Positions 3,106 to 57,114 of a DNA stretch of 64,000 nt are shown piece after piece. Both the position numbers and the translations under genes were made by a program. Source of the DNA: Haliotis rubra. Taxonomy: Eukaryota. The notes below the pieces were generated by a model that was not told where the DNA came from, searched no databases, and was given only the letters and a program-made list of their open reading frames with translations. The DNA is taken from NCBI RefSeq assembly GCF_003918875.1, contig NW_025765004.1, positions 62,001 through 126,000 on the forward strand, in the 5' to 3' direction. Position 1 is the stretch's first letter, and each line of letters opens with the position of its first letter.

Positions 3106-6032
3106 GACAACTCACGTGACCCTATATTCAAATAGCCCACGCTCGACACAGTGTGCGTCCTGTTTTGATGAATACAGGGTGTGTGTTGAAAGTACATCAT
3201 ACCACAATAGAGACGGGTTGTATCAACATGGCTCGGGAGTAGGAATCTTCAAGTCATGAAAATGTAGTTCAATAAATTTCATACAGAACGTGTCCTGTAC
3301 AAGTATAACACCATGAAAGTAGTGGACAGTTGTTATGTTTAATGCTATCCAGATAGTTCATACCAGCTTTTTCCGTTCAAATGTAATGTGATGAAAAGTT
3401 TGATTTTGACCCATGTAATCTAACATGATGTATACGGTTTTAGTTTTACTTCAGGACTACATTCAGAGCGTGATATTTTAAAAATAAAAGGTTCGAAATA
3501 CACATGGATAGAAACATATCATTTAGAAAACTGATTAGTCATGTAGCAGTGTAACAGTATGAAGCTAGGTTTGTTGTGAAAGAGACAGAAGCAATCGATC
3601 AGACACATAGAGGCGAGCAAAGTGTTTCATGTTTACAATAATCACCCTTAATTCGACGAGAGAACACATTTTAACATGGACATTTTAAACACGAGGAAAA
3701 TGTTTCATTGGAAAAAATATGTGGAAGCAGGTTTATGCATAGCTAGTGAGTAGCAGATAGACTAAGCGACTGACCGTCCATAACAATGTCAACATACCGG
3801 CCTAATAATGTCAACGTACCGGCCTCGCCTACCAGTGAAGCTTCTCATTCATAAATTGTGTGACCAGTGTACCGTATTTATTATATGTTAGGGAAGATGT
3901 GTTGTACATTTCTTATTTTTAAAGGGAGTTATTTCAGAGAGGCCAAGGGTATTCCCCTCATTAAACCTTTGTTTTTGTTGTTGTTGTGTGTGTGTATTAA
4001 ATGTAACCGGTATTTAATACATTTGAATGAATTGCGGTAATGTAGGAATGTATGTGTGTGTAGATTTTATACATATATCTGAGCATGAATGTATGACACC
4101 TTTCAATAGATCAATTACGGTTCTAACCACTACATTAAACATTACTATGAGTGTGGTTAGCAGTTCATATTTATAAACACATCATAAGTAACAGATTTCG
4201 GATGAATGAACTCGCCCGCACACATGTCTAAGGTCAACATAACTCTGGGTATTTTCAGACCATCGGACTGTAAACAGTTACACATTGATAACAGGAGGGT
4301 GTAGCGTTTGTGTGGAATGCACTCATCCTTGTAAAGGTAAATCCATGTAAAATACGTGTTTAAACTCACAATTTAAATGATTACATTACTTTTAGATGTA
4401 TTGGTATGAATGGGAGGCTCGTAGATCTGTGAAGTTTGTGTCGATGTCTGTCTAGGGACTACACATATTATCATCGAGGTATATGAAGATCATATTCTAT
4501 GCAAAAACTGACAAAACAAACAATCCATTCATATCATTTATTGATTCAAGTCAATCGGTTCAATGCAAAGCTGTGATGTACGAATGGACAATAGGATTCA
4601 CTCTGGAACATTAAAGTCAACAGTTCAGTCACTTTATACACATGCTGCTGCTTCAGGGTGCGATTGTTTAAACAGCAAGTCCATGTTTTGAAACACATTT
4701 CGCACTGTTGAATGATCAGTTCACCTTTCCTATGCTGTTTTAAGGTTGAATGGTTATCTATAGTCTATGATTTATCCATTGCCTTTAAAGATTTCCGTCC
4801 AGGGGGTCCCAGTTTCACAACTCCTCTTATGTAGAGGGAAATTCGGCGTTTCTTATCGTTCAAACACCTCACTTTATGAGGTGTTTTTAAAATATGAATC
4901 AAACTAGACGTGCAGCGTTGACTCGACATTCTCTTCTGACTGTTAGAGTGATATATTAATGACCGGTATTTATTTCCTCAAACATTCTCCTCCATGTCAT
5001 CCTCCCTCCCTCACTCCCTTCACTCCTTATCCCCTCAACCCAGCGTGCTGCCCCCCAAGTCTCCTTAGAAATAAGCAAGTCAAGATCAGCTTGTGAATAA
5101 ACCATTCCTCTGAAGGCTCCCTTTCAAGTATCCACGGTTATACATGAATATCAGCCTGCCGCCCCTCCAACCCTCTCTCCTTAGGCTTTTGTGATCTGTT
5201 GCTTACAGTTCAGTTCAAGATGTCTTACCTGTGTGATGCATGTTCTGGCCTGCTGCCCATGGAAGCCAACGGTGAAGACCATCAATGATTATTTACCGGT
5301 GTGTATTGTAAGACCAAATCAAAATACACATACCATCGGTTTTTAATGCATAGTCACAAATGTGCTGTGAAGAGAAGAGCGTCTTCTAAGATTCCCTCAT
5401 GCACGTGTAAGACAGTATAAACTCTATGGTAGTGTAGCCTGACAAACAGTTTAACTCTCGCCAGCAAACGGATTGGACGTGAACAACATGAAGAAAGCAT
5501 CAGTGATTAGACTTGACCCTAGAGATATATTTAGGAAGACCACGTTGAGAAAATCACAACAGAGAAAGAAACCACAACCATGATGACAAAGAAGAGACAG
5601 GTAACACCTAAAATGAAAACGGTGACAACCCAGAAGGGACAGAAGACAACAACCCATGAAAAGATGATATATGACACAGATGCAAGCTGAAGTGAATCAG
5701 GCAAAAGCTGCTTTGAAACGAGCGTAAGCTGACTTGAAACGTCAACAGTATAAACGAAGCCTGGTAATCTGGACACTTGTATAGGATCACGATGGGAGTA
5801 ACTACCTGTCTGGACTGTGGGAAGATAATCTACAGAGACATTGGAAGCAGTCACATAGATCCACTCCAAACGTACCTCCTCCTTCTCTGGATAACAACGC
5901 CCCTCCTGTAGGTAATGACCCTCCTCAAGAGAGACACCCTCCTTCTCAAGAGAGACACCTACCTCCTCCTCAAGAGAAACATTCTCCTCCTCAAGACAGA
6001 GACGCCCTCCTCCTCCTCTTCCTCGCCAGCAG

Positions 6033-6511
6033 CAAGAACGGTTCAAGTTTCTGATTCCCTCGAATGCACTCGTTGTGGGACCCAGTGGCTGTGGAAAGTC
6101 TGTGTTTACCTCTCATGTGCTCCGACATGGCCTGATCCAACCCCAACCTACCCGCATTGTTTGGTGTTATACTCAATGGCAGCCATTATATCAGGACATC
6201 AGCGAGCAGCTGCCTCAGCTGACCTTTGTAAAAGGAATTCCCTACGATATCTTGGACGAGGATTACTTTGATGCTGGCCAACGGAATGTGTTGGTCCTGG
6301 GTGAATTCCTGGCTGAAGCAAAGGAAGACGAGTGTATTTCCCGGCTGTTTACTCAAACCTCCCATCACAAGAATGTATTGATCTTTCTCTTGGTACAAAA
6401 TTTGTCTCCGACAGGTAAACAATCGAGAGCCATTGCTTTGAATGCACATTATGTCAGCCTGTTTCATTCCCCCATAGAGAAACAGCAAATCAAACTCTTC
6501 ACTCGTAGAAT
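6033..6511 (+). pseudogene. Polinton A32-like DNA packaging ATPase, N-terminal part
   Basis: Reads FKFLIPSNALVVGPSGCGKS (Walker A), IVWCYTQWQPLY, a degenerate Walker B (LVLGEFL instead of DD), LFTQTSHHKN, QNL, LNAHYVSLF. Truncated at the nested insertion. Confidence 0.88.
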
Positions 6512-6608
6512 TAACGGATCGCCAGTGGAGAGTTAACCACACCCCCAAAAGAAAGGGAGATAGCTCTGAAAAGGTCCGACAATATAGCTGTCGAACCCAA
6601 CTGTCAAA

Positions 6609-9600
6609 ATGGCAGTCGTGATATCGTTTAGAGACATTCCCGATGATATTGGCCCTAAATATCTGCCTTATGAACTAACTTTGCGGCAAACACAACGTGG
6701 AGTGGCTTTTAGTTCGGCCTCATACCTTCATTCCGTTACTTTCCATTCATGTTGTGATAATATCGTGTCGATTTGCGGGAGGATTTATAGAAGTCAACGG
6801 AAAACCGAAGCTCCTCATGTAATCAACTTGTCCCTTGACAGAATTCACAAATCGTTCACTGACGCCTATTGTAGCTGCAAATGTGGGTGAGTAGTACACG
6901 AAATAACGTCGGGTGCCTTTCCAATTGATGGCATAAATCTGTTGGGGTTTTATAAGCGGCATATATAGATAGCAAATCAATTACACGTCTGTGTGCTGGC
7001 CGTTTCAGTTGTTGACAATGAAACCCATGTTATCCCATATAATTACGTTAAATTTCTATCATCGTGAAAGAAACAGATTCTGTAATAAATGTAAGAGGTA
7101 AATGTAATATCTGTTATTAGGCATTGCTGGAATAAAACCATGTAAATGTATTTTCTTCTCAATTATATAATATATTCCTGCTATCAATCACAGTTCTGTA
7201 ACAAATTTATTCACCCAATTCTCTTCAATGCAAGTGGAAAGTGTTCCCATGTACTGGCACTTGTCCTGATACTGGAAGGCTGGAAGATATCAGGCTATCA
7301 AGTCATTCCTTCACAGCCCTCTTCCACTAGCCTGCCTCAGCAGTGGGATAAACCAAGGGAACCAAAGATTGAATCTGAAGCAGTGTCACATAATTATTGC
7401 CAGGCCTGGAAATCTCAATAGGAAAAGGAAACCTGTGATGGCCACATTCAATGACAACAGGTGATGTAATTATATATATAAAGTTTTATTACAGATTCTG
7501 AACTTGTTTTATGAAAATGATGTATCATAATGCAAGCATTACCTATATGACATTTTTACTCCATGATCATCAGATCATAGAAAATACTCATCACAGTTTA
7601 GAAAGCAATATCAGATGACTATTGAGCAGTTGTTTGCATAAATATTAAAGTTCAGTTAAGTGAACAAGGAACAAGAGCATGTACAAAATATTCATTGACA
7701 TTGCAAGTTTTTAACATACACAAATACAATATTTGTGACTAATACCTTTTGTACTTGCAGGAAAGTTCAAATACAGGAGTCGGACATGTCTCTGCTGCAC
7801 ACAACGAAGGGATTTGCTATTTCATACCTGACAGATACATGTACCAGCACCAGTCAGACAGTTGACACACCAATAGGTCCTCAGGTTGTTGGATCAACTC
7901 TTGGACATCAAGTAATTAATCTTTATCTTGAATTAAATATGGCATAAAATTGGTCAAGAAACAGCACACAAACCAAATTTGATTTACTGAGGAAAACAAA
8001 CTTAAATGCAATTTCTTACCAACAATTTTGAATTTTTTTACCCTTCCAATGGCATTTTCGACCACCACTCTGTGTGTTGCAATTTTCACTGTTTCTGCCA
8101 CATCAGACACACACATCTGACCTATACCTAGTGCAAAAGGGGAAATGTTGAGGCGTAATCCAGTTGCCCTTATTTCCTTTTCAATATTAAAGCCCTTGTC
8201 TGCCATCAGACCATCTCCCACTTTAAGTTTCCTACACTTAACCATTTCTCTGAGGAGGGACAGATAACCACTTTTTTCAGTTAATTCTTTGTCTGATATC
8301 GCCCCAGAAAACAGCATTGATATGAATGTAATTGAACCTCTTGGGTCCACACCAATGAGACCTTTCAGGGTAGTACTTGATTTGTAATCTGAATATGCTT
8401 GACTTTGCCTTGTCAGTGAAGAGGGTCTCTGAATTTTTATTTCTGTTCCATCAATCATACTGAAAGTGTTTGGAAATTCCTGGCGAAATTTTGAAGGCAT
8501 GTGTTGCTGCAAAACATCACGGTGAGGCCAAATTGACACAGATCCAAACCTGTAATATAAATAATTTATCCAATTTGAAAACGCAGTACTGCAATCTTTG
8601 GGTGATATCAGAAACAACTTTGAGAGATGTTTAAAATCAAAATTCTGTCTAAGTTTAATCAGAACAAGCAAAAGCTGGTCTTCAAGACCCATACACTTCA
8701 AACTGCCAACTGTTCTGGTAAACTGAAACGGTTCATCATCAGCATTGCCAGGGACAACAAATTAAAATATTTTCTGAAACTGTTCGTAGGGAAATCCTGT
8801 GTAATACTTGTAATTCTTTTTCTCTATATTTTTACAAAAAGAATACACATCATGCTTAACATTTTTAGCACTAATTTTGGTGTTGATCTGCTGGGCACGC
8901 ATGAGCTTCTCCTTTTCTATGAACCGGTTTGGCCATATTGTTCTCTGCAGCTAGAGCCAGCATATCCAGTGGCAGAGGACCTGTAAAAGCAATTACAACT
9001 GTTTCAAGCAATAATACATTCTACAGAGAAGATATGATCTGGCTAGTTTAGGGCACCAAACCCATTATTAAGCCTGAAACAGACTTACCTATTATCAATC
9101 TGACTTGTTGTAATGTTTAGAAAATGCTTTGCACACAAAAGAATAAGTTAAGAATGAACACATAGCACCCACAACATACTTGTTTCAATTTGAGATTTAA
9201 GAAGTAAAACAGCCTTATTACCTCCCTTGTATGAAACTAAGTGTGAATAAACTGGCTTCTTCTCTTTACAGGCACCCTTAATTAGACCAATAGTGGTTCC
9301 AAAGATGGAGGACAGGTGCGGAGATGTCACATTTCCAAAAGATGACAACTTACCCGAACTGGATTCAATTGCAACTTTAAAACATCAGTGGAAAGATTTA
9401 GAACTTTCAGTTGACGAGAGTCCCATAATTTAGAAAAAAATACAAGATCTCAAAGCAAGTCTGATTTGTGGTACAAAGCGAGGAAAGGGCGAATTACTGC
9501 TTCAAACTTTGGTCTGCTTATGACTTGCAAAAAACACATCAATGACACATTTATCAGAAACACCTTTGACAAAAAGAAATTTTCCTCCAATCCAACAACT

Positions 9601-10056
9601 TATGGGAATTCTAATGAGAAAATAGCTAAACAAATGTACATGAAAAAAACTCAAAATCATCTTCATGACATTGGCTTTGTTGTAAACCCATCTATTCCAT
9701 TTATAGGAGCCACCCCTGATGCTATAGTGTGTGACACTTTTGTTTCTGGTATTGTGGAAATTAAGTGTCCTTATGCTGTAAGGGACTTGACCATTAATGA
9801 AGCCTCCTGTATGACTGGTTTCTTTTTGAACAAAGAAGGCAAATATTACAACTTGAAGAGAGGTGATAGGCATTGGTATCAGGTACAGGGCCAACTACTT
9901 GTAACTGGGGCACCATTTTGTGACTTTGTAACCTACACCAGACAAGACTTTAACATTGAACGGATATATCCAGATAGGAATACCTTCAGGACTCTGCTTG
10001 AAACTCTGTCACAAACATATGTCAATCACGTCAAACCATACTTTGCAGGGAAATAA
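6609..10056 (+). pseudogene. SWIM zinc finger + YqaJ/lambda-exonuclease-like gene of the ISL2EU element; exons ~6609-6886, ~7229-7460, 7761-7911, 9272-10056
   Basis: AYCSCKCG|(AS)GKCSHVLAL forms the SWIM CxC..CxH. Also TSLPQQWDKPR, WYKARKGRITASNFG, GATPDAIV, VEIKCPY, WYQVQGQL. Donors and acceptors are in compatible phases; the intron 1 acceptor appears mutated. Frameshifts near 7390 and 9425. Confidence 0.88.
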
Positions 10057-11848
10057 ACTTCATAAAAAATTACCCATGGTGCCACTTTGTTGGACAAGAA
10101 TATCAGATTCCTGCTGCATGGTTGTAGGCTCTGGATGTTCCATATCCGTCTGATTTGGTGAATCAGAAATATCTGTATCATGATTACATCTGAAAAAGAA
10201 GATGAAGACCAAATTATCTTATACCTGAACCTCAAATGTGTTACAGCCTTTAAATGGTTACCATCTTTGTTCATTTCCTATAACTTTTTGATTACCTATC
10301 AGGACTATTTATGCCTGGATTAACTTTTCTAATATATGTGTTTATTGCTATTACAATTCAGCGATAAATAACTTTTTTGGCTTCACTTGTTAAGTGCCCA
10401 CAGTTGACATCATATCGCTTAGTTGTTTCACATGTAATATTGCCATCTGCTTCCCTAGTTTTATTCGTCTCCCAGCTGATGAAGGAGTAAGAATATATTC
10501 TATGATGGATCCTCAGGAAATAACCAGTATGAATGGACTAGTTCTTGTGGATATTGGACCATCTGATTCATACATTATCTCTATATTTGAGAAGTCATCT
10601 TTTCTGTATGAAATATGAGCAATCTATGGATAGGGACTAGTGGCTGTGTCTGGCCATGCCTCTGACTGAGTTGAGTTTTTACGCCACTTTTAGCAATATT
10701 CCAGCAACATCACGGCGGGGACCCAGAAATGGGCTTCACCCATGTAAAAAATACATCTATCAATGTGTAAATTAATGTTGTATTTAAACATATTTAAAAA
10801 GAACCACTGTCGTGGCTGATCTTAGTGGTTACAGGAAATGTCCACGTTGATGTATTAATATTTATGATGGATTGGAATGAATACTTTGAATCCTTTAGAG
10901 TTATTGTGTATTATCACTCAATATTAGCCCTCAGTGAAACACAGTTTTGACAATTAGATTTTTATCAGTCCCTGCAGGTGACATCATCCCTTCATATGCT
11001 TATATGAATAGAACTTGAGTATGATTGTGATCTTGTGATGCATGTGATACTTCTGTCTTTTCGTAACTACAAAGGATCTAAATGTGTGACATTACCTTTA
11101 CTAATTATAACTTTCTGTGATACTCTCAGAATAAACAAGGATTTGTTTGATTTTTATATTTCAATGGTTTTGTCGTGTTTTGAGCAGTAAGTATAAAGGC
11201 AACAATGTTCTACCTGTGTGTTTCAAGAAGAACTTTCCTTTTCCCGTCCCCCATAAATGGCAAGCGTGGTTTGGGTCGTGGTCTTACTGTCTTTGGATTT
11301 TCATTTTGTTCATGAGGTAGTGCAGACGCAGGGTCCGGAAATGTCTTGGAGGGTTTTCCATCAACAAAGTGCTGTAAATAAGCTCGCATTTATTAGTTGA
11401 TAGAAACAACGATAAACAACATGGATGTATCTGAAATCGTATGCTCAAACACAGACACCCTCTGTCCTTGACATACCACGCGGTGGAACATTAGTAACTA
11501 AATCAGTGAAAATCGGTGTAAACTGGTTATATAACAACTATAAAGCACTGAAAGTCTACCAAGTCAAAGATTTCTAAATTTGCATTAACTTCAACATTGG
11601 TTAATATGTTATTCAATTTTAGTTTCCATACCTTTGTACATACGAAGAAATGTTTTCCTCGGCTGTGGTCACGAAGTATGTCCATGTTTCAGTTGATACT
11701 TGGGGCGACCACACAAACGTATCCATCGTTGACATTTGTCAAAATTTCTGGCAGGCTTGGGAAATGGAATAAACGTGATACCACCAGCAAGACGTTCCGG
11801 GTACCGCGTGTCCGAGTTGCAGGTACCCCAGCTACACCTTTTCACCAT
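7916..11848 (-). pseudogene. THAP-HTH-DDE transposase of the ISL2EU element; exons 11848-11632, 11371-11214, (middle exons uncertain), ~8980-7916
   Basis: THAP: MVKRCSWGTCNS...FPKP...CQRWIRLCGR...VCTK|HF. Then KYYTGF, HTH LEDQLLLVLIKLRQNFDFKHLSKLF, and catalytic IDGTE, MADKGF, RVVVENAIGRVK. A frameshift near 11688 and an in-frame stop near 8762 indicate inactivation. Confidence 0.9.
10665..10745 (-). mobile_element. Truncated SINE (3' part) inside the ISL2EU element
   Basis: TTTTACGCCACTTTTAGCAATATTCCAGCAACATCACGGCGGGG matches the reverse complement of the SINE at 37176-37346. Confidence 0.75.
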
Positions 11849-12020
11849 GATCAAAAAGTTGACTGTGAACGTCGATTTATTTTTGAAAAGTCCGCCAGAC
11901 CGCTGATGTCGGACAAAATGGTGGTCAGCTGTCAGCTGACGGCAACGCGATGCGGATTGAATAATTTGACGTTTCTCGTTGGTCATGTCATTTGTTTGAT
12001 TGACAGGTGGCGATACATTA

Positions 12021-12150
12021 ATTCCCCGAACATATGGATCACTTTATGGCAATGTATGAAGAGGCTGCTGAAACACCCTATGGACAATTCATCATTGATC
12101 TTAAACCTACCACCAAAGATAAGGATCGACTGCAGGTCAATCTCATAAAC
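12021..12150 (+). pseudogene. Polinton packaging ATPase, C-terminal part
   Basis: FPEHMDHFMAMYEEAAETPYGQFIIDLKPTTKDKDRLQVNL matches the typical C-terminus of this family (FP...YEDAT..PYGYL.IDL) and continues the 6033-6511 fragment. Confidence 0.85.
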
Positions 12151-12635
12151 GAGGAAAATGGGCAAGTCAAAGCTCAGTCTGAACCTGATCTGCCTAGGGA
12201 CAAGTTGACTACAACAGAATCTCTGGATAGTCCTCTGACTCAAGAAGAGAGACTGCCCCAACATCAGCTGACTCAAATTGAAACTGATTCAGACACGAGT
12301 AGTGAGACATCATTGACTATGGCCACGGCTTGTGCAGATTGCGGGTGCTGATATATAACATGCACGATCTACAGTGACATATCAAACATTGCTGTCGAGC
12401 CAATAGCCTTCAACCTAAGAGAAAGCGCGCCAGACTTGAGAGTGATGACAATGACAGTGACTATGACGACCTAGCCTCTTCCCAGAAAGGCAGTGATCCT
12501 GCCGTCAAACCTCCTTGTGGGAAGCCAACATTCTCTGATATGGAAGCCGAGGAGTGGCAAAATGTAGGCTCACAACGCATCTGGAAGCAGGTGTAGATGG
12601 GTGTAGGTGTAGCAGGACAAGATGAAACTGCAGAG

Positions 12636-20324: not shown

Positions 20325-23300
20325 CTAAAAGTCAGTGTAATCAAGACATGGATCACTGGCTACAGGAGACAGGTATCCACGCGGGGTTGTTGAATTACAT
20401 GCAGCTCTACTTTCATACGCCACATTATCCACCAGGCAACAAGCTTCTTCCATAAGAGTTCGGTCTTCTCCTTGATTCCCACGTCGCGCCTGAAATCCAG
20501 TATGATCCGTCCATGAGCTCTCCGACTCGTTCCACTTCCAGTCAAATATTGGCAAGGAGTTAGCCCTCTGTAGGGATGTTTTGAACATATGCAAATGTCC
20601 AGTCTTGTGCTCTCTTGACCGTGCGGTGTGACACATAGCAACTGGGGAAGGTGGAGGTTGACCGCGTATTCTGCACGTGTTGTTGCTGCTGCTTGCAACG
20701 ACCCCATCACTTTCATCCATGTCATCTTCGTTGATGTCGTCATAAGCATTTGCAGACATCGGTACGTCTGGCAGTTGTCTACCTTGGGGACTTAGCAAGC
20801 GCCTGTTGGTCCTGATGGACGATGACGTACATGATCTGGAATTATACAGAAACATCACATGAGTTCTGACCAGGAAGAAACAAATAGTATCATAAAAAAA
20901 CAGGATATTTGATGTTTCATAATGTACAGATATCGGCACAAAAACAGTCCAATTTGAGGTACCTTCTAATGAGGAAAGCTACTGTTCCAGAAACCAGCAG
21001 CAACACCACAGATCCTATGACGTAGTTCACAGACGGTGTCATCTGGACGTCCCCGTCCTTTGTATCCAGCGTCGGTTCTAAAAACAGAAATAGGATTCCT
21101 TATACGTATTGTTTAATTCGTCAGGCAAAATTATTCCAAGTAGAACATATCGTCCTGTAAATAATCGAATCTGGTCCAGGCAAACCAGTGACTGATCTTA
21201 TAAGCTAGGATCAGTACCACCTGGGTAAGACGCTTTACCAGCCAAGTCACACTGCCTGAGTGAGTGAGTGAGTTCATATTTAACATCACATCGGCAATAT
21301 CTCAGCCATATCGTGACGAAAACAATTTATACAATAAATAATGAAAATATTTTTAAGAGTAAAACCTGTCTATAATGGACAGTAAAACACTAGAGTATCA
21401 CAGATATGAACATAAAACTAGCATATGAAACTAAAACATTTTAATTAAAGAAGACAATACAATATAAAACACGGGATATAGATCGCCAACAACTGAAGGG
21501 AGATCACCATACTAGGAACCATGGGGACTTACATTACTTTTGCTTTGCTACCCTAGCTGCATGGATCCCTTAGCTGGACTTAATAGTTTGGTAGTGCTAA
21601 ATTGACCTTGAAGTTTTGGGACGTACGTACCCTCTCATGAGTATCATACACTCGATTCCCAATCACAATCCACTCCAACAAAAATAATAGGTGTTAATGG
21701 AATCACCGAAGAATCTTTCACCTGATCATTTTACAGAACTTATCTCAGGTTGAGGATTTTTTTACACACACACATCGTTAGAATTAGTCTTACTTCTTAA
21801 AAACGTAAACAAATATATTTGATGTACAGAGTGTACAGTATGGGGTACAGTATACCAACGTGCCTCCTGTACAAAATAATACAAATTCGATATTCAAATG
21901 ATTGATTGAGTTCATATTTACGCCGCTTTCTTAACAATATTCCAGCTATATCACGTCGGGGGACACCAGAAATGGGCTTCACACATTGTACCCATGTGGG
22001 GAATCGAACCCGGATCTTTGGCGTGACGAGCGAACGCTTTAACCACTAGGCTACCCACCGCCCGATATTCAACTGTGATGTGGAGAAATGAGTATAGTTT
22101 ACAAGATATAAGCTTAGTCCAGTGAGCTAACATTACACATGAACGGAAATTGTCAGACAAGTTTACTTGCTTGCTTTGGTACGAGTTACTGGGGACAGAT
22201 AGCTGTTCTACAAGCTTCGTGGCGTTTGTAAACTTGTGCTAACCATACATTTGTTATAGATATATTTTCCACTGTAGTAATATAACGCTATGAACGCATG
22301 GTGGATCGGGCCACTTCCCTGTTTCACACAGCAGTTGTAACGCTACGTACCCAGTACTTTCCCAGAGGGTTGAATCGCTGACTTTGTGTGATGACGATAA
22401 GGTGCCTGACTACGAGAGTGTGGATTCGAATCCCGGATGGGACCAAACCCGCCCCGCCCAAAAGTACAAAAAGTACTAGAATCTGTACTTCACTGAGAAA
22501 GTGTAATCCCAAATATACTTTATGGTACGTGCAAACACTGCTGTAACATTAAAGGTAATGTACAAACCTAATCACCTACACAATAGGAAATGGCATTATT
22601 AAGTTTAAACACTAACCTGGTTGTATTTCATCTGCGAGGCATAGTCCGTTCTCCCGGTTACAGACAGAGCAATCCCCTACACACGACCTGTTGCAGAGAA
22701 AGCCGTAGTGTCCATCGTTGCAGCCGTTGATACAGTAACCTGTTTTCAGATCACATACACGTTGACGACATCCGTCACTGCACTGCTCATCACAGTCTTG
22801 TCCATAGTAGCCCGATGTACAGCCAGCTAGACACCTGCCTTGGGCATCACACAGTGCTCCTTTACAGTTAGTGGTACATCGGAATTCACATCTTGCTCCA
22901 AAGTGGCCTTTTTCACACCCATGCAGACAGACACCAGAGGAACGATTACAAGCACGAAAGGCACAGTTCTCGTTGCAGCCAAACTGGCATTTCGGCCCAA
23001 AGTTTCCATTAGCGCAGGCAACTGATTGATGATCATCTCTGCAAGTACCATCCATATGGCATCCTTCAGTGGGACATGTTTCTCTGCAGTTGGAACCACA
23101 AGATGATCCGTAAAGAAACGCTCTACATTTTGTGCATGTATTATCTAAACACTGTAGACAATCAACAGGGCATTCGAAACTGCAAGTACTTCCCCAGTAT
23201 CCTGAGATACAGCCATCAGTACAGTTTCCTGTACCGAATCCAGAGTCGGAGCATCTGTTGCTGACGCATCCTCTGCTACATCTGTACCCACAGCTCCGGC

Positions 23301-37175: not shown

Positions 37176-37346
37176 AGGGGCGGTGGGGTAGCCTAGTGGT
37201 TAAAGCGTTGGCTCGTCACGCCAAAGACCCGGGTTCGAATCCCCACATGGGTACAATGTGTGAAGCCCATTTCTGGTGTCCCCCGCCGTGATGTTGCTGG
37301 AATATTGCTAAAAGCGGCGTAAAACCAAACTCAGTCAGTCAGTCAG
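37176..37346 (+). mobile_element. Full-length tRNA-derived SINE with 11-bp TSD
   Basis: Head GGGGCGGTGGGGTAGCCTAGTGGTTAAAGCG...GGTTCGAATCCC, (CAGT)n tail, TSD TCCTTTATCTA at 37165-37175 and 37347-37357. Partial or decayed copies at 56104-56196 and ~56775-56900. Confidence 0.92.
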
Positions 37347-55210: not shown

Positions 55211-57114
55211 TTGCCGGTTAATGACGGATTGATTGACTATGCAAGTTACTTAACAATGTGAAAGTTAAAAAAATATACTAGTGCACATTATATGTTGTAC
55301 TTGCATACCCCACTTGTAATATGTAGTTATCTGCTCACTGTGATATAATTTGTCACTCCTGTATTAATACATTCAGTTTGTATTGACTGCAGATTTGTCT
55401 TTATGTCATTTGTCATTTAATTACCCAGACACGAGTGCCGGTGTGTCTATTCTGATTGTACCGGTAGGCCTGATTTGACACTTGTGCACGACTATATGAT
55501 AGTCACATTAGCCTTATCTGGGTACTATTATTACTACATAAGTGTGTCAAGGTTGTATAGATTATGAAATGGGAAAATACATTAATTCAATAAATGGCTT
55601 CCATTAATATAGGCCAATACTTACAATGTTGGTGTCCGATGAAGGAAAGACAACATTTGATTAATTTATATGATTATGTCATATTTTATGTCACCAAATT
55701 GAAATTAGAAGCATATTTTGTGGTTATCTCTATATCCTGCATCATAAGCTGCCTTTTGATATGCTACATGACTATGTTGTGATAGGTTTATGAAAACATG
55801 TTTTTTCACGAAATGGTGTACAAGCAATTTTGGGAACTCATATTCAATCACCCCACAATGACACTTATAGCAAACAGAATAAAAGGAACCATGTTTTTCC
55901 TGAATCCGGCGATTACAATTAGTATTGGTTCCAAAAATTAACATGTAATTCCCACGGAATTACACAAGCCCCTGCACTAATATGGCGGCGGGCTGTAAAT
56001 AATCCAGTGATCAACAGTATGGGCATATTGGGATGCGATGACATGTGTCAGCCAAGTCAGCGAGCCTGACCACCCGTTCCCGTTAGTCGCGTCTTACGAT
56101 CACCTGGGCTTCACACATTGTACCCATGTGGGGAATCGAACCCGGGTCTTCAGCGTGACGAGCCAACGCTTTAACCACTAGGCTACCCCACCACCCAGCA
56201 TGAGTATAGTAGAAACCTTAATCAATATTTAGGAACACCGTCTTATGTCAGCTGTTGTGACGACGTAATGTTTGACTGTTTCCTTCTGGTCTCTCTTCGT
56301 GGTGTTTGAAAACAGAATATTTGTTCGGTAGATCGGCGAATGTTGCCAACCAGTTTCTTCCACAGTTACCGAGATAAGGGATGACAGTGAGATTACCAAC
56401 TACTTGGTGTATGGACATTCACCTATGAATGTACACTTAGTAACACTATTCAGACAAACTGAATAAGACTTACAGAGTATTTCCGTCTCCAGACCGGGAA
56501 GATTTTCTGGATAAGGAAATCTGTGTACAGAACGGAATGTTTCATTTTTTGGTAAAACCTTAAACTACATGATTCCACATAGCTTAGCTGGATATTTTGG
56601 CGCATACAAAATGATCAAGAAGTCAGCCTAACGTCACTGCTGACATTGTCTCTTCAGAGACAACCGCCGCCATATAGCTGGAATATTGCTGAGTGCGGCG
56701 TAAAACTAAACTCACTCACACACTCAAAGAGGCAAGTGTGTTGGTGAGTGTTGTAATACACCACCTCAAGCAATATTTTACGCCGCTTTTAGCAATATTC
56801 CAGCAACATCATGGCGGTGAACACCACTACAAATGTAGGAGATAAGATCCGGACCTTCGGCGAAACGAGTGAATTAGAACGTTTTAACCACAAGGCTACA
56901 TAAACGAGTAGCTAACATTTTAACCTTATACTTTTATAGTTTACAGTGGTGGCTTAAGAATAATAGAAAAAGTACGATGTTCGTGTCATAGCTTTTAATT
57001 TTCCATTTTTTCCTCAAATTTCTAAATAGAATTTCCAAACCTTTATGCTTTCAAATTCAATAAACACGAAAACACTTTTTTATCTAAAATTCTGTTAAGA
57101 CTGTCGTTTCAATC

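Follow-up and report, generated by a model that had tools for sequence, protein, structure and literature searches.

Can the two genes of a single DNA transposon be threaded through one another, so that the catalytic exon of each lies in an intron of its partner? This question is raised by a 5509-bp transposon at positions 6512-12020 of a 64-kb stretch of Haliotis rubra DNA, which is referred to as the window throughout. The initial annotation described it as one ISL2EU element whose two genes converge and run through one another, a SWIM-YqaJ gene on the forward (+) strand and a THAP-transposase gene on the reverse (−) strand. Our analysis confirms this observation: both the domain content and the single pair of terminal inverted repeats (TIRs) and target-site duplications (TSDs) agree with it. 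We consider it highly probable that the transposon is a decayed autonomous ISL2EU element (PIF/Harbinger-like and IS5-related) of a sub-lineage with mutually interleaved genes.

The 1065-nt DDE exon of the transposase (7916-8980, −) lies wholly within intron 3 of the + gene (7912-9271, 1360 nt), and its stop codon (7916-7918) begins 4 nt after the + donor GTAATT at 7912. The 785-nt YqaJ exon (9272-10056, +) in turn lies wholly within the predicted intron 3 of the − gene (10073-8981, 1093 nt), with its stop codon 17 nt from the donor of that intron. Both genes have at least one exon that falls in an intron of the antisense partner, and no exons overlap. The positions given earlier for both catalytic exons, for the + intron and for the 4-nt distance were correct. 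Spacers comparable to the double-intronic one of the window (Table 1), of about 125-280 nt, occur in the relative L002, in Mytilus and in Ostrea. Both intron 3 donors are the same hexamer GTAATT (7912-7917 and 10068-10073) at 4-17 nt from the stop codon of the partner gene, which gives the layout a mirror-like appearance.

It follows from this geometry that the primary transcripts are complementary over at least 2141 nt (7916-10056), in line with the more than 2 kb claimed for the two pre-mRNAs. The first canonical AATAAA on the − strand past the DDE stop codon is found at 7490; if canonical signals are used, the 3' untranslated region (UTR) of the transposase would therefore cross exon 3 of the + gene. 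On the YqaJ side the mature mRNAs probably share little overlap, given that an AATAAA overlaps the stop codon and that poly(A) begins 15 nt past the stop in the related contig L094.

Table 1. Positions of the features of the ISL2EU element in the window; the last two rows give a public gene model of Mytilus for comparison.
Feature	Position	Strand	Remarks
Left target-site duplication AT	6510-6511		A at 6509; matches published ISL2EU target A/AT/T (PMC4482050)
Left TIR TAACGGATCGCCA	6512-6524	+	11/13 identical to right end
SWIM-YqaJ exon 1	6609-6886	+	ATG, first SWIM half (CSCKCG), donor GTGAGT; P0245 residues 1-93, 95.7% identity (tblastn)
SWIM-YqaJ exon 2	7229-7460	+	second SWIM half (GKCSH), PQQWDKPR motif; frameshift near 7389
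SWIM-YqaJ exon 3	7761-7911	+	donor GTAATT at 7912
Transposase last exon	7916-8980	−	coiled coil, HTH_Tnp_4, DDE_Tnp_4; acceptor at 8981/8980
Double-intronic spacer, 291 nt	8981-9271		both polypyrimidine/AG acceptors, head to head
SWIM-YqaJ exon 4	9272-10056	+	lambda-exonuclease-like YqaJ domain; frameshift 9415-9421; stop TAA 10054-56
AATAAA poly(A) signal	10052-10057	+	overlaps YqaJ stop codon
Transposase exon 3, predicted	10074-10189	−	acidic linker, 17/20 pyrimidine tract before AG, donor GTAATT
Transposase exon 2	11214-11371	−	end of THAP finger (HF...PDP), basic stretch; homologous to L002 6328-6582
Transposase exon 1	11632-11848	−	ATG, THAP C-x4-C ... C, 1-nt frameshift near 11681-11684, donor GTATGG
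Right TIR TAATGTATCGCCA	12008-12020	−	inverted imperfect copy of left end
Right target-site duplication AT	12021-12022		T at 12023
Mytilus transposase exons	8001-8132, 8782-8889, 10539-11636	+	public gene model
Mytilus YqaJ gene exons	13567-13370, 12673-12524, 10313-9504	−	public gene model

The element is bounded by the TIRs TAACGGATCGCCA (6512-6524) and TAATGTATCGCCA (12020-12008, reverse strand), which match at 11 of 13 positions, and the Ostrea edulis copy L004 carries the core GGATCGCC at either end. The target context reads A-AT-element-AT-T (6509-6511 and 12021-12023). An AT duplication within an AATT target has been published for ISL2EU (PMC4482050); a 4-bp AATT reading fits this copy equally. 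Published ISL2EU TIRs usually start with GG, whereas the TIR starts with TAACGG in the window and TGGCGG in Ostrea, so that GG is internal. Since the paper words this start as usual, it is a weak criterion. Inside the element no internal TIRs were found. The start codon of the + gene (6609) is located 97 nt from the left end and that of the − gene (11848) 172 nt from the right end, close to the approximately 100 and 170 bp noted initially.

The exon bounds of the + gene were set with the Haliotis rubra RefSeq protein P0245, which is 96-100% identical over window exons 1-4 (tblastn). Window exons were compared singly here, and all full-length proteins are database entries. Pfam detects the YqaJ domain expected of the second ISL2EU gene at 9466-10056 (+, E=5.8e-17), with the motifs TPD...EIK present in the window sequence. 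The SWIM domain is detectable by Pfam only in spliced homologues; in P0245, which is near-identical to the window, it spans the junction of exons 1 and 2 (E=0.011). It is invisible in the unspliced window because CxC is encoded in exon 1 and CxH in exon 2. The acceptor of exon 2 reads AA at 7227-28, and the next in-frame AG would shift the exon start to 7235.

For the − gene, Pfam reports HTH_Tnp_4 (E=2e-13) and DDE_Tnp_4 (E=1e-38) at 7916-8701, the domains expected of an ISL2EU transposase. Alignment A1 shows conservation of the query residues D104, D188 and E235. Homologues of the DDE domain in molluscs show 60-68% identity, and the only plasmid matches to the transposase are cyanobacterial IS5-family transposases. 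The THAP domain at 11669-11986 (−) scores weakly in window exon 1 alone (E=0.007, under the Pfam cut-off), because an intron splits the finger (VCTK/HF). With the THAP domain of the Coilia protein P0088, which passes the cut-off at 35.7 bits, it shares 64% identity. The reading phase between exon 2 and the DDE exon calls for a further exon, and the candidate at 10189-10074 is the only phase-restoring one that combines a strong pyrimidine tract with a good donor. Analogues of this exon 3 are present in the gene models of Mytilus and Sinanodonta; about 30 nt separate the end of the Sinanodonta exon from the YqaJ stop codon.

Whether the small exons and the catalytic exon on each strand belong to one gene can be judged from spliced sequences. 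The Logan contig L094, from an oyster-like species, joins exons 2-4 of the SWIM-YqaJ gene and continues into an AATAAA just before the stop codon, a 15-nt 3'UTR and a poly(A) tail. In Ostrea genomic DNA the exon blocks of this contig are 2.7 kb apart and flank the DDE exon. A second Logan contig, L007, unites all four exons in one ORF (open reading frame) of 485 aa and falls among the interleaved loci on the YqaJ tree; the Mercenaria model P0246 is a full-length SWIM-YqaJ protein of 487 aa. The reading advanced initially would have fallen if the SWIM exons were not spliced to the YqaJ exon; this splicing is seen in L094, in L007 and in the models of five species. At 1-210 of L007 a TIR-like sequence, TTACGGAT...AACCACGCCCCCAAAA, resembles the left end of the window, and the contig starts about 115 nt upstream of it.

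On the transposase side, THAP or linker exons are joined to the DDE exon in models of Coilia, Prochilodus, Sinanodonta, Tegillarca and Mytilus, and the Coilia and Sinanodonta models (deposited GenBank annotations) place the THAP/linker-DDE splicing across the YqaJ exon. In relatives with a plain gene order a single ORF of 470-514 aa encodes THAP-HTH-DDE without interruption, and SWIM-YqaJ likewise occupies one ORF. The catalytic exons start at a conserved AG acceptor, with stop codons few codons upstream and without a conserved methionine; the YqaJ acceptor cAG/GCACC is kept in L002, L004, L008, L009 and L014. The claim that THAP is spliced to DDE is thus supported by gene models and by the intronless ORFs of plain relatives, while a clean spliced transcript was not found. 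The contig L005 was considered as proof of this splicing and was left as ambiguous, as it retains intron 1 and is 67% identical to a genomic copy of Sinanodonta.

The same layout is found well beyond the window, with Haliotis rubra among the species that show it. For Mytilus galloprovincialis and Ostrea edulis, the NCBI gene models have a reciprocal nesting identical to that of the window. The order THAP(+), YqaJ(−), DDE(+), SWIM(−) is also present in Sinanodonta woodiana, in the teleost Coilia grayii and in Branchiostoma floridae, where DDE survives as a remnant only, and again in about 20 metagenome contigs. In Patiria miniata (L089) YqaJ and THAP were detected without a detectable DDE, which is uninformative on layout. 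The stop codon lies 4 nt from the donor of the partner gene in L005 as in the window, and exons are tightly packed in several families.

To compare the layouts, custom hidden Markov models (HMMs) for five modules were mapped on 88 loci, of which 80 came from a metagenome scan. The mapping gave 19 interleaved, 31 plain and no mixed loci. Five more loci were classed as interleaved because their SWIM exons directly follow the DDE exon, and L006 and L088 were added separately. This leads to a total of 26 independent loci with the same order and strands in one clade, a recurrence that excludes chance. The 31 plain loci are more distant and are metagenome contigs throughout; they are ordered THAP(+), DDE(+), YqaJ(−), SWIM(−), tail to tail and often intronless. 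Conservation of the interleaving beyond this copy therefore holds for molluscs, a teleost and amphioxus, but not for ISL2EU in general, as it is confined to one derived clade. A poly(A) signal at the stop codon was tried as a signature of this clade and discarded, with counts of 5/12 interleaved vs 5/23 plain loci for YqaJ and 3/20 vs 5/29 for DDE.

Some plain-type loci show peculiarities of their own. In L067 (2058-5000, −) and L071 (1597-3591, −) SWIM-YqaJ forms one long ORF of 981 and 665 aa, respectively. In L067 an extra N-terminal region with a GDGNCFYRA motif resembles an OTU-type cysteine protease and precedes a long Ser/Thr/Pro-rich linker. L047 carries YqaJ segments on both strands within 4692-5725 (4692-4865, −; 5026-5725, +), suggesting an inverted partial duplication or a misassembly.

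Trees were calculated for both catalytic domains; for frameshifted loci the HMM-matched segments were concatenated, and no letters were added at the breaks. The interleaved rows of the DDE tree all group in a single clade, with a support of 99 in the Shimodaira-Hasegawa-like approximate likelihood-ratio test (SH-aLRT). This clade further includes L005 and three unclassifiable rows, and DDE identity between interleaved members goes down to about 46-49%. Its sister is a plain-type clade. Rooting with four cyanobacterial IS5-family transposases puts the interleaved clade seven nodes deep within the plain lineages, which indicates a derived layout with a single origin. In the YqaJ tree, 13 of 14 interleaved loci are placed in agreement with this. 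In Coilia grayii (L003, 9113-9799) YqaJ is 28% identical to the window and groups with the plain locus L030 (support 100), while its DDE sits in the interleaved clade; this mismatch could reflect module exchange or long-branch attraction.

As far as these trees indicate, interleaving arose once from a plain tail-to-tail ancestor with two largely intronless genes, and then persisted in molluscs, a teleost and amphioxus. The swap would have taken the fewest steps if the central DDE-YqaJ segment was duplicated and one copy of each exon was subsequently lost. No relics of a duplicated DDE or YqaJ exon were detected in 10057-11215 or 7462-7915, even at E<=10.

The copy in the window is a pseudogene copy in which both genes are broken, by at least four frameshifts (near 7389, 9415-9421, 8915-8935 and 11681-11684) and one in-frame TAA at 8762-8764 inside the DDE exon. 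The reading frames of the intact relative L002 continue across every one of these sites.

For an intact element the following working may be envisaged. The terminal regions of 97 and 172 nt would hold the promoters, as the geometry suggests, and transcription would run inward and convergently. In the + transcript three small exons encoding the SWIM zinc finger and a linker would be spliced to the exon of the YqaJ/lambda-exonuclease-like domain, and in the − transcript three small exons for the THAP zinc finger and a linker to the HTH-DDE (helix-turn-helix) exon. Each catalytic exon lies antisense within intron 3 of its partner, the pair standing head to head across the 291-nt spacer. The TIRs are presumably bound by the transposase, which would move the element by cut-and-paste at AATT and leave the AT duplications. 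The SWIM-YqaJ nuclease is a putative accessory protein that could perform 5'-3' resection at the transposon ends or at the donor break.

The head-to-head position of the catalytic exons resembles a divergent gene pair, and gene callers report these exons as stand-alone ORFs in metagenomes. One might accordingly think of two separate or nested elements or of four independent small genes, with DDE and YqaJ driven from a bidirectional promoter in the 8981-9271 spacer and no relation of the THAP and SWIM exons to them. We regard this as very improbable and have rejected both the nested-element and the central-promoter reading, on account of the one TIR/TSD pair without internal TIRs, the contigs that link SWIM to YqaJ, and the single THAP-DDE and SWIM-YqaJ ORFs of plain relatives. 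The conserved AG acceptors with upstream stop codons and without a conserved start codon also speak against it, as does the division of both zinc fingers between exons 1 and 2. An artefact of assembly or annotation can practically be discounted: although the public gene models are automated and one Ostrea transposase model spans 40 kb, the window, the approximately 20 metagenome contigs and independent chromosome-level assemblies from five genera all agree in order and strands.

Given that the layout is real, the question remains what it is for, if anything. We see about an even chance that it is a neutral frozen accident without a regulatory role, for example after a DDE-YqaJ duplication with subsequent losses, in which splicing merely tolerates the arrangement. 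The single origin is in favor of this, as are the lack of a duplicated-exon relic in the window, the greater diversity of the plain lineages, which are clearly viable, and the stop-codon poly(A) signal, which is not enriched in interleaved loci. The layout has nevertheless persisted through deep divergence and across phyla, and its exons are tightly packed, down to the 4 nt in the window and L005. We take persistence and packing to mean that the layout is compatible with activity only; selection is not implied. A self-limiting device appears unlikely by comparison. In such an adaptive scenario, which the initial annotation put forward, convergent transcription over at least 2.1 kb would lead to polymerase collision or to double-stranded RNA (dsRNA) and small RNAs, and the two genes would be tied together. 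The geometry is real and conserved, and with canonical signals the 3'UTR of the transposase would extend in antisense across + exon 3, but plain convergent relatives manage without interleaving, and the YqaJ mRNA seems to end right past its stop codon, which lessens the overlap of the mature mRNAs. It is doubtful, too, that reciprocal nesting represents a selected architecture as such, in which obligatory convergent transcription across the catalytic exon of the partner, around a common 291-nt core that is intronic for both genes and contains both acceptors, might couple the dosage of transposase and nuclease, feed a copy-number brake by dsRNA or small RNAs and block derivatives with one enzyme. 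The neutral frozen accident is more likely than an adaptive brake.

Several points weigh against our view of the element as an ISL2EU transposon with interleaved genes. The window's transposase exon 3 was placed from reading phase and splice signals only, and a clean spliced transposase transcript was not found among the sequences, which offered gene models and the ambiguous L005. The latter joins the second THAP exon to the DDE exon yet retains intron 1, as might be expected of either an incompletely spliced RNA or a variant copy. The approximately 115 nt upstream of the TIR in L007 could likewise mark a read-through transcript or a processed genomic copy, and public gene models, both RefSeq and deposited GenBank annotations, are predictions. 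With regard to the origin, identity to the outgroup is only 22-25%, the rooting path includes one weak node (27), and the Coilia YqaJ pairs with a plain-type locus on long branches. Finally, at least five lesions mean that neither protein is expressible from this copy.

Two further features were seen in and around the element. The transposon splits a P-loop NTPase-like ORF with a GPSGCGKS Walker A motif (6075-6536 and 12034-12351, +), which has weak Pfam matches only (Adeno_IVa2, E=0.099; NPHP3_N, E=0.061). Across the reconstructed empty site GAATTCCCC its two halves differ by one base in reading frame, and it may represent an ATPase from another mobile or virus-like element. A search for a second ISL2EU copy within the 64-kb window was negative; the sole match was an unrelated 82-nt repeat at 10662-10743 in a transposase intron. 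Its copies lie at 37256-37338 (92% identity), 21903-21986, 56776-56820 and 56664-56718, and it is probably a small interspersed repeat.

The element agrees with ISL2EU of the PHIS (PIF/Harbinger-ISL2EU-Spy) superfamily as described by Han et al. (2014, 2015; PMC4122938, PMC4482050) in its AT duplication, AATT target, short TIRs, size near 5 kb and animal hosts. These papers speak of two ORFs without mention of their relative layout, whereas the genes of the sub-clade of the window are spliced and interleaved. The plain ISL2EU loci (L019, L023, L067, L071) carry the same four modules THAP, DDE, SWIM and YqaJ in convergent genes; they differ in that THAP-DDE is followed by YqaJ-SWIM, tail to tail, without overlap and often without introns. 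PIF/Harbinger elements share a related DDE_Tnp_4 transposase and the two-gene organization, and need both proteins for transposition (PMC9179366). Their second protein, however, is a Myb/SANT DNA-binding protein and not a nuclease, they duplicate TWA, and no interleaving is reported for them. KolobokE (PMC9587614) is likewise a DNA transposon with an accessory PD-(D/E)xK lambda-exonuclease-like nuclease, but belongs to another transposase superfamily and carries the nuclease as a downstream fusion to the transposase domain. Animal genomes also contain nested genes and natural antisense pairs, for example the nested genes of Drosophila (PMC3814207, PMC5174743), which place an exon-bearing unit in an intron of the opposite strand and for which transcriptional interference has been discussed. 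There a whole gene resides inside another, while the window has a reciprocal nesting that is part of a mobile element and is inherited throughout a transposon clade.

In the literature on the coding capacity of ISL2EU, on YqaJ together with THAP or SWIM and on interleaved or nested genes we found no description of the layout (Repbase was outside this search). ISL2EU itself is known and the interleaved layout is new; overlapping RefSeq models exist but have gone unremarked. Annotators should be aware that overlapping pairs of "uncharacterized" genes in mollusc and fish genomes are single transposons. Interleaving can further serve as a structural marker for sorting ISL2EU lineages.

Reciprocally nested protein-coding genes are rare, and none were found reported inside a transposon in the literature searched. 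The interleaving described here is heritable, defines a clade of mobile elements and has stayed compatible with their spread across animal phyla, and it bears on the role of the YqaJ nuclease in transposition. Interleaved and plain ISL2EU elements together represent a natural pair for studying the effects of convergent transcription and antisense exons on expression and on small-RNA silencing.

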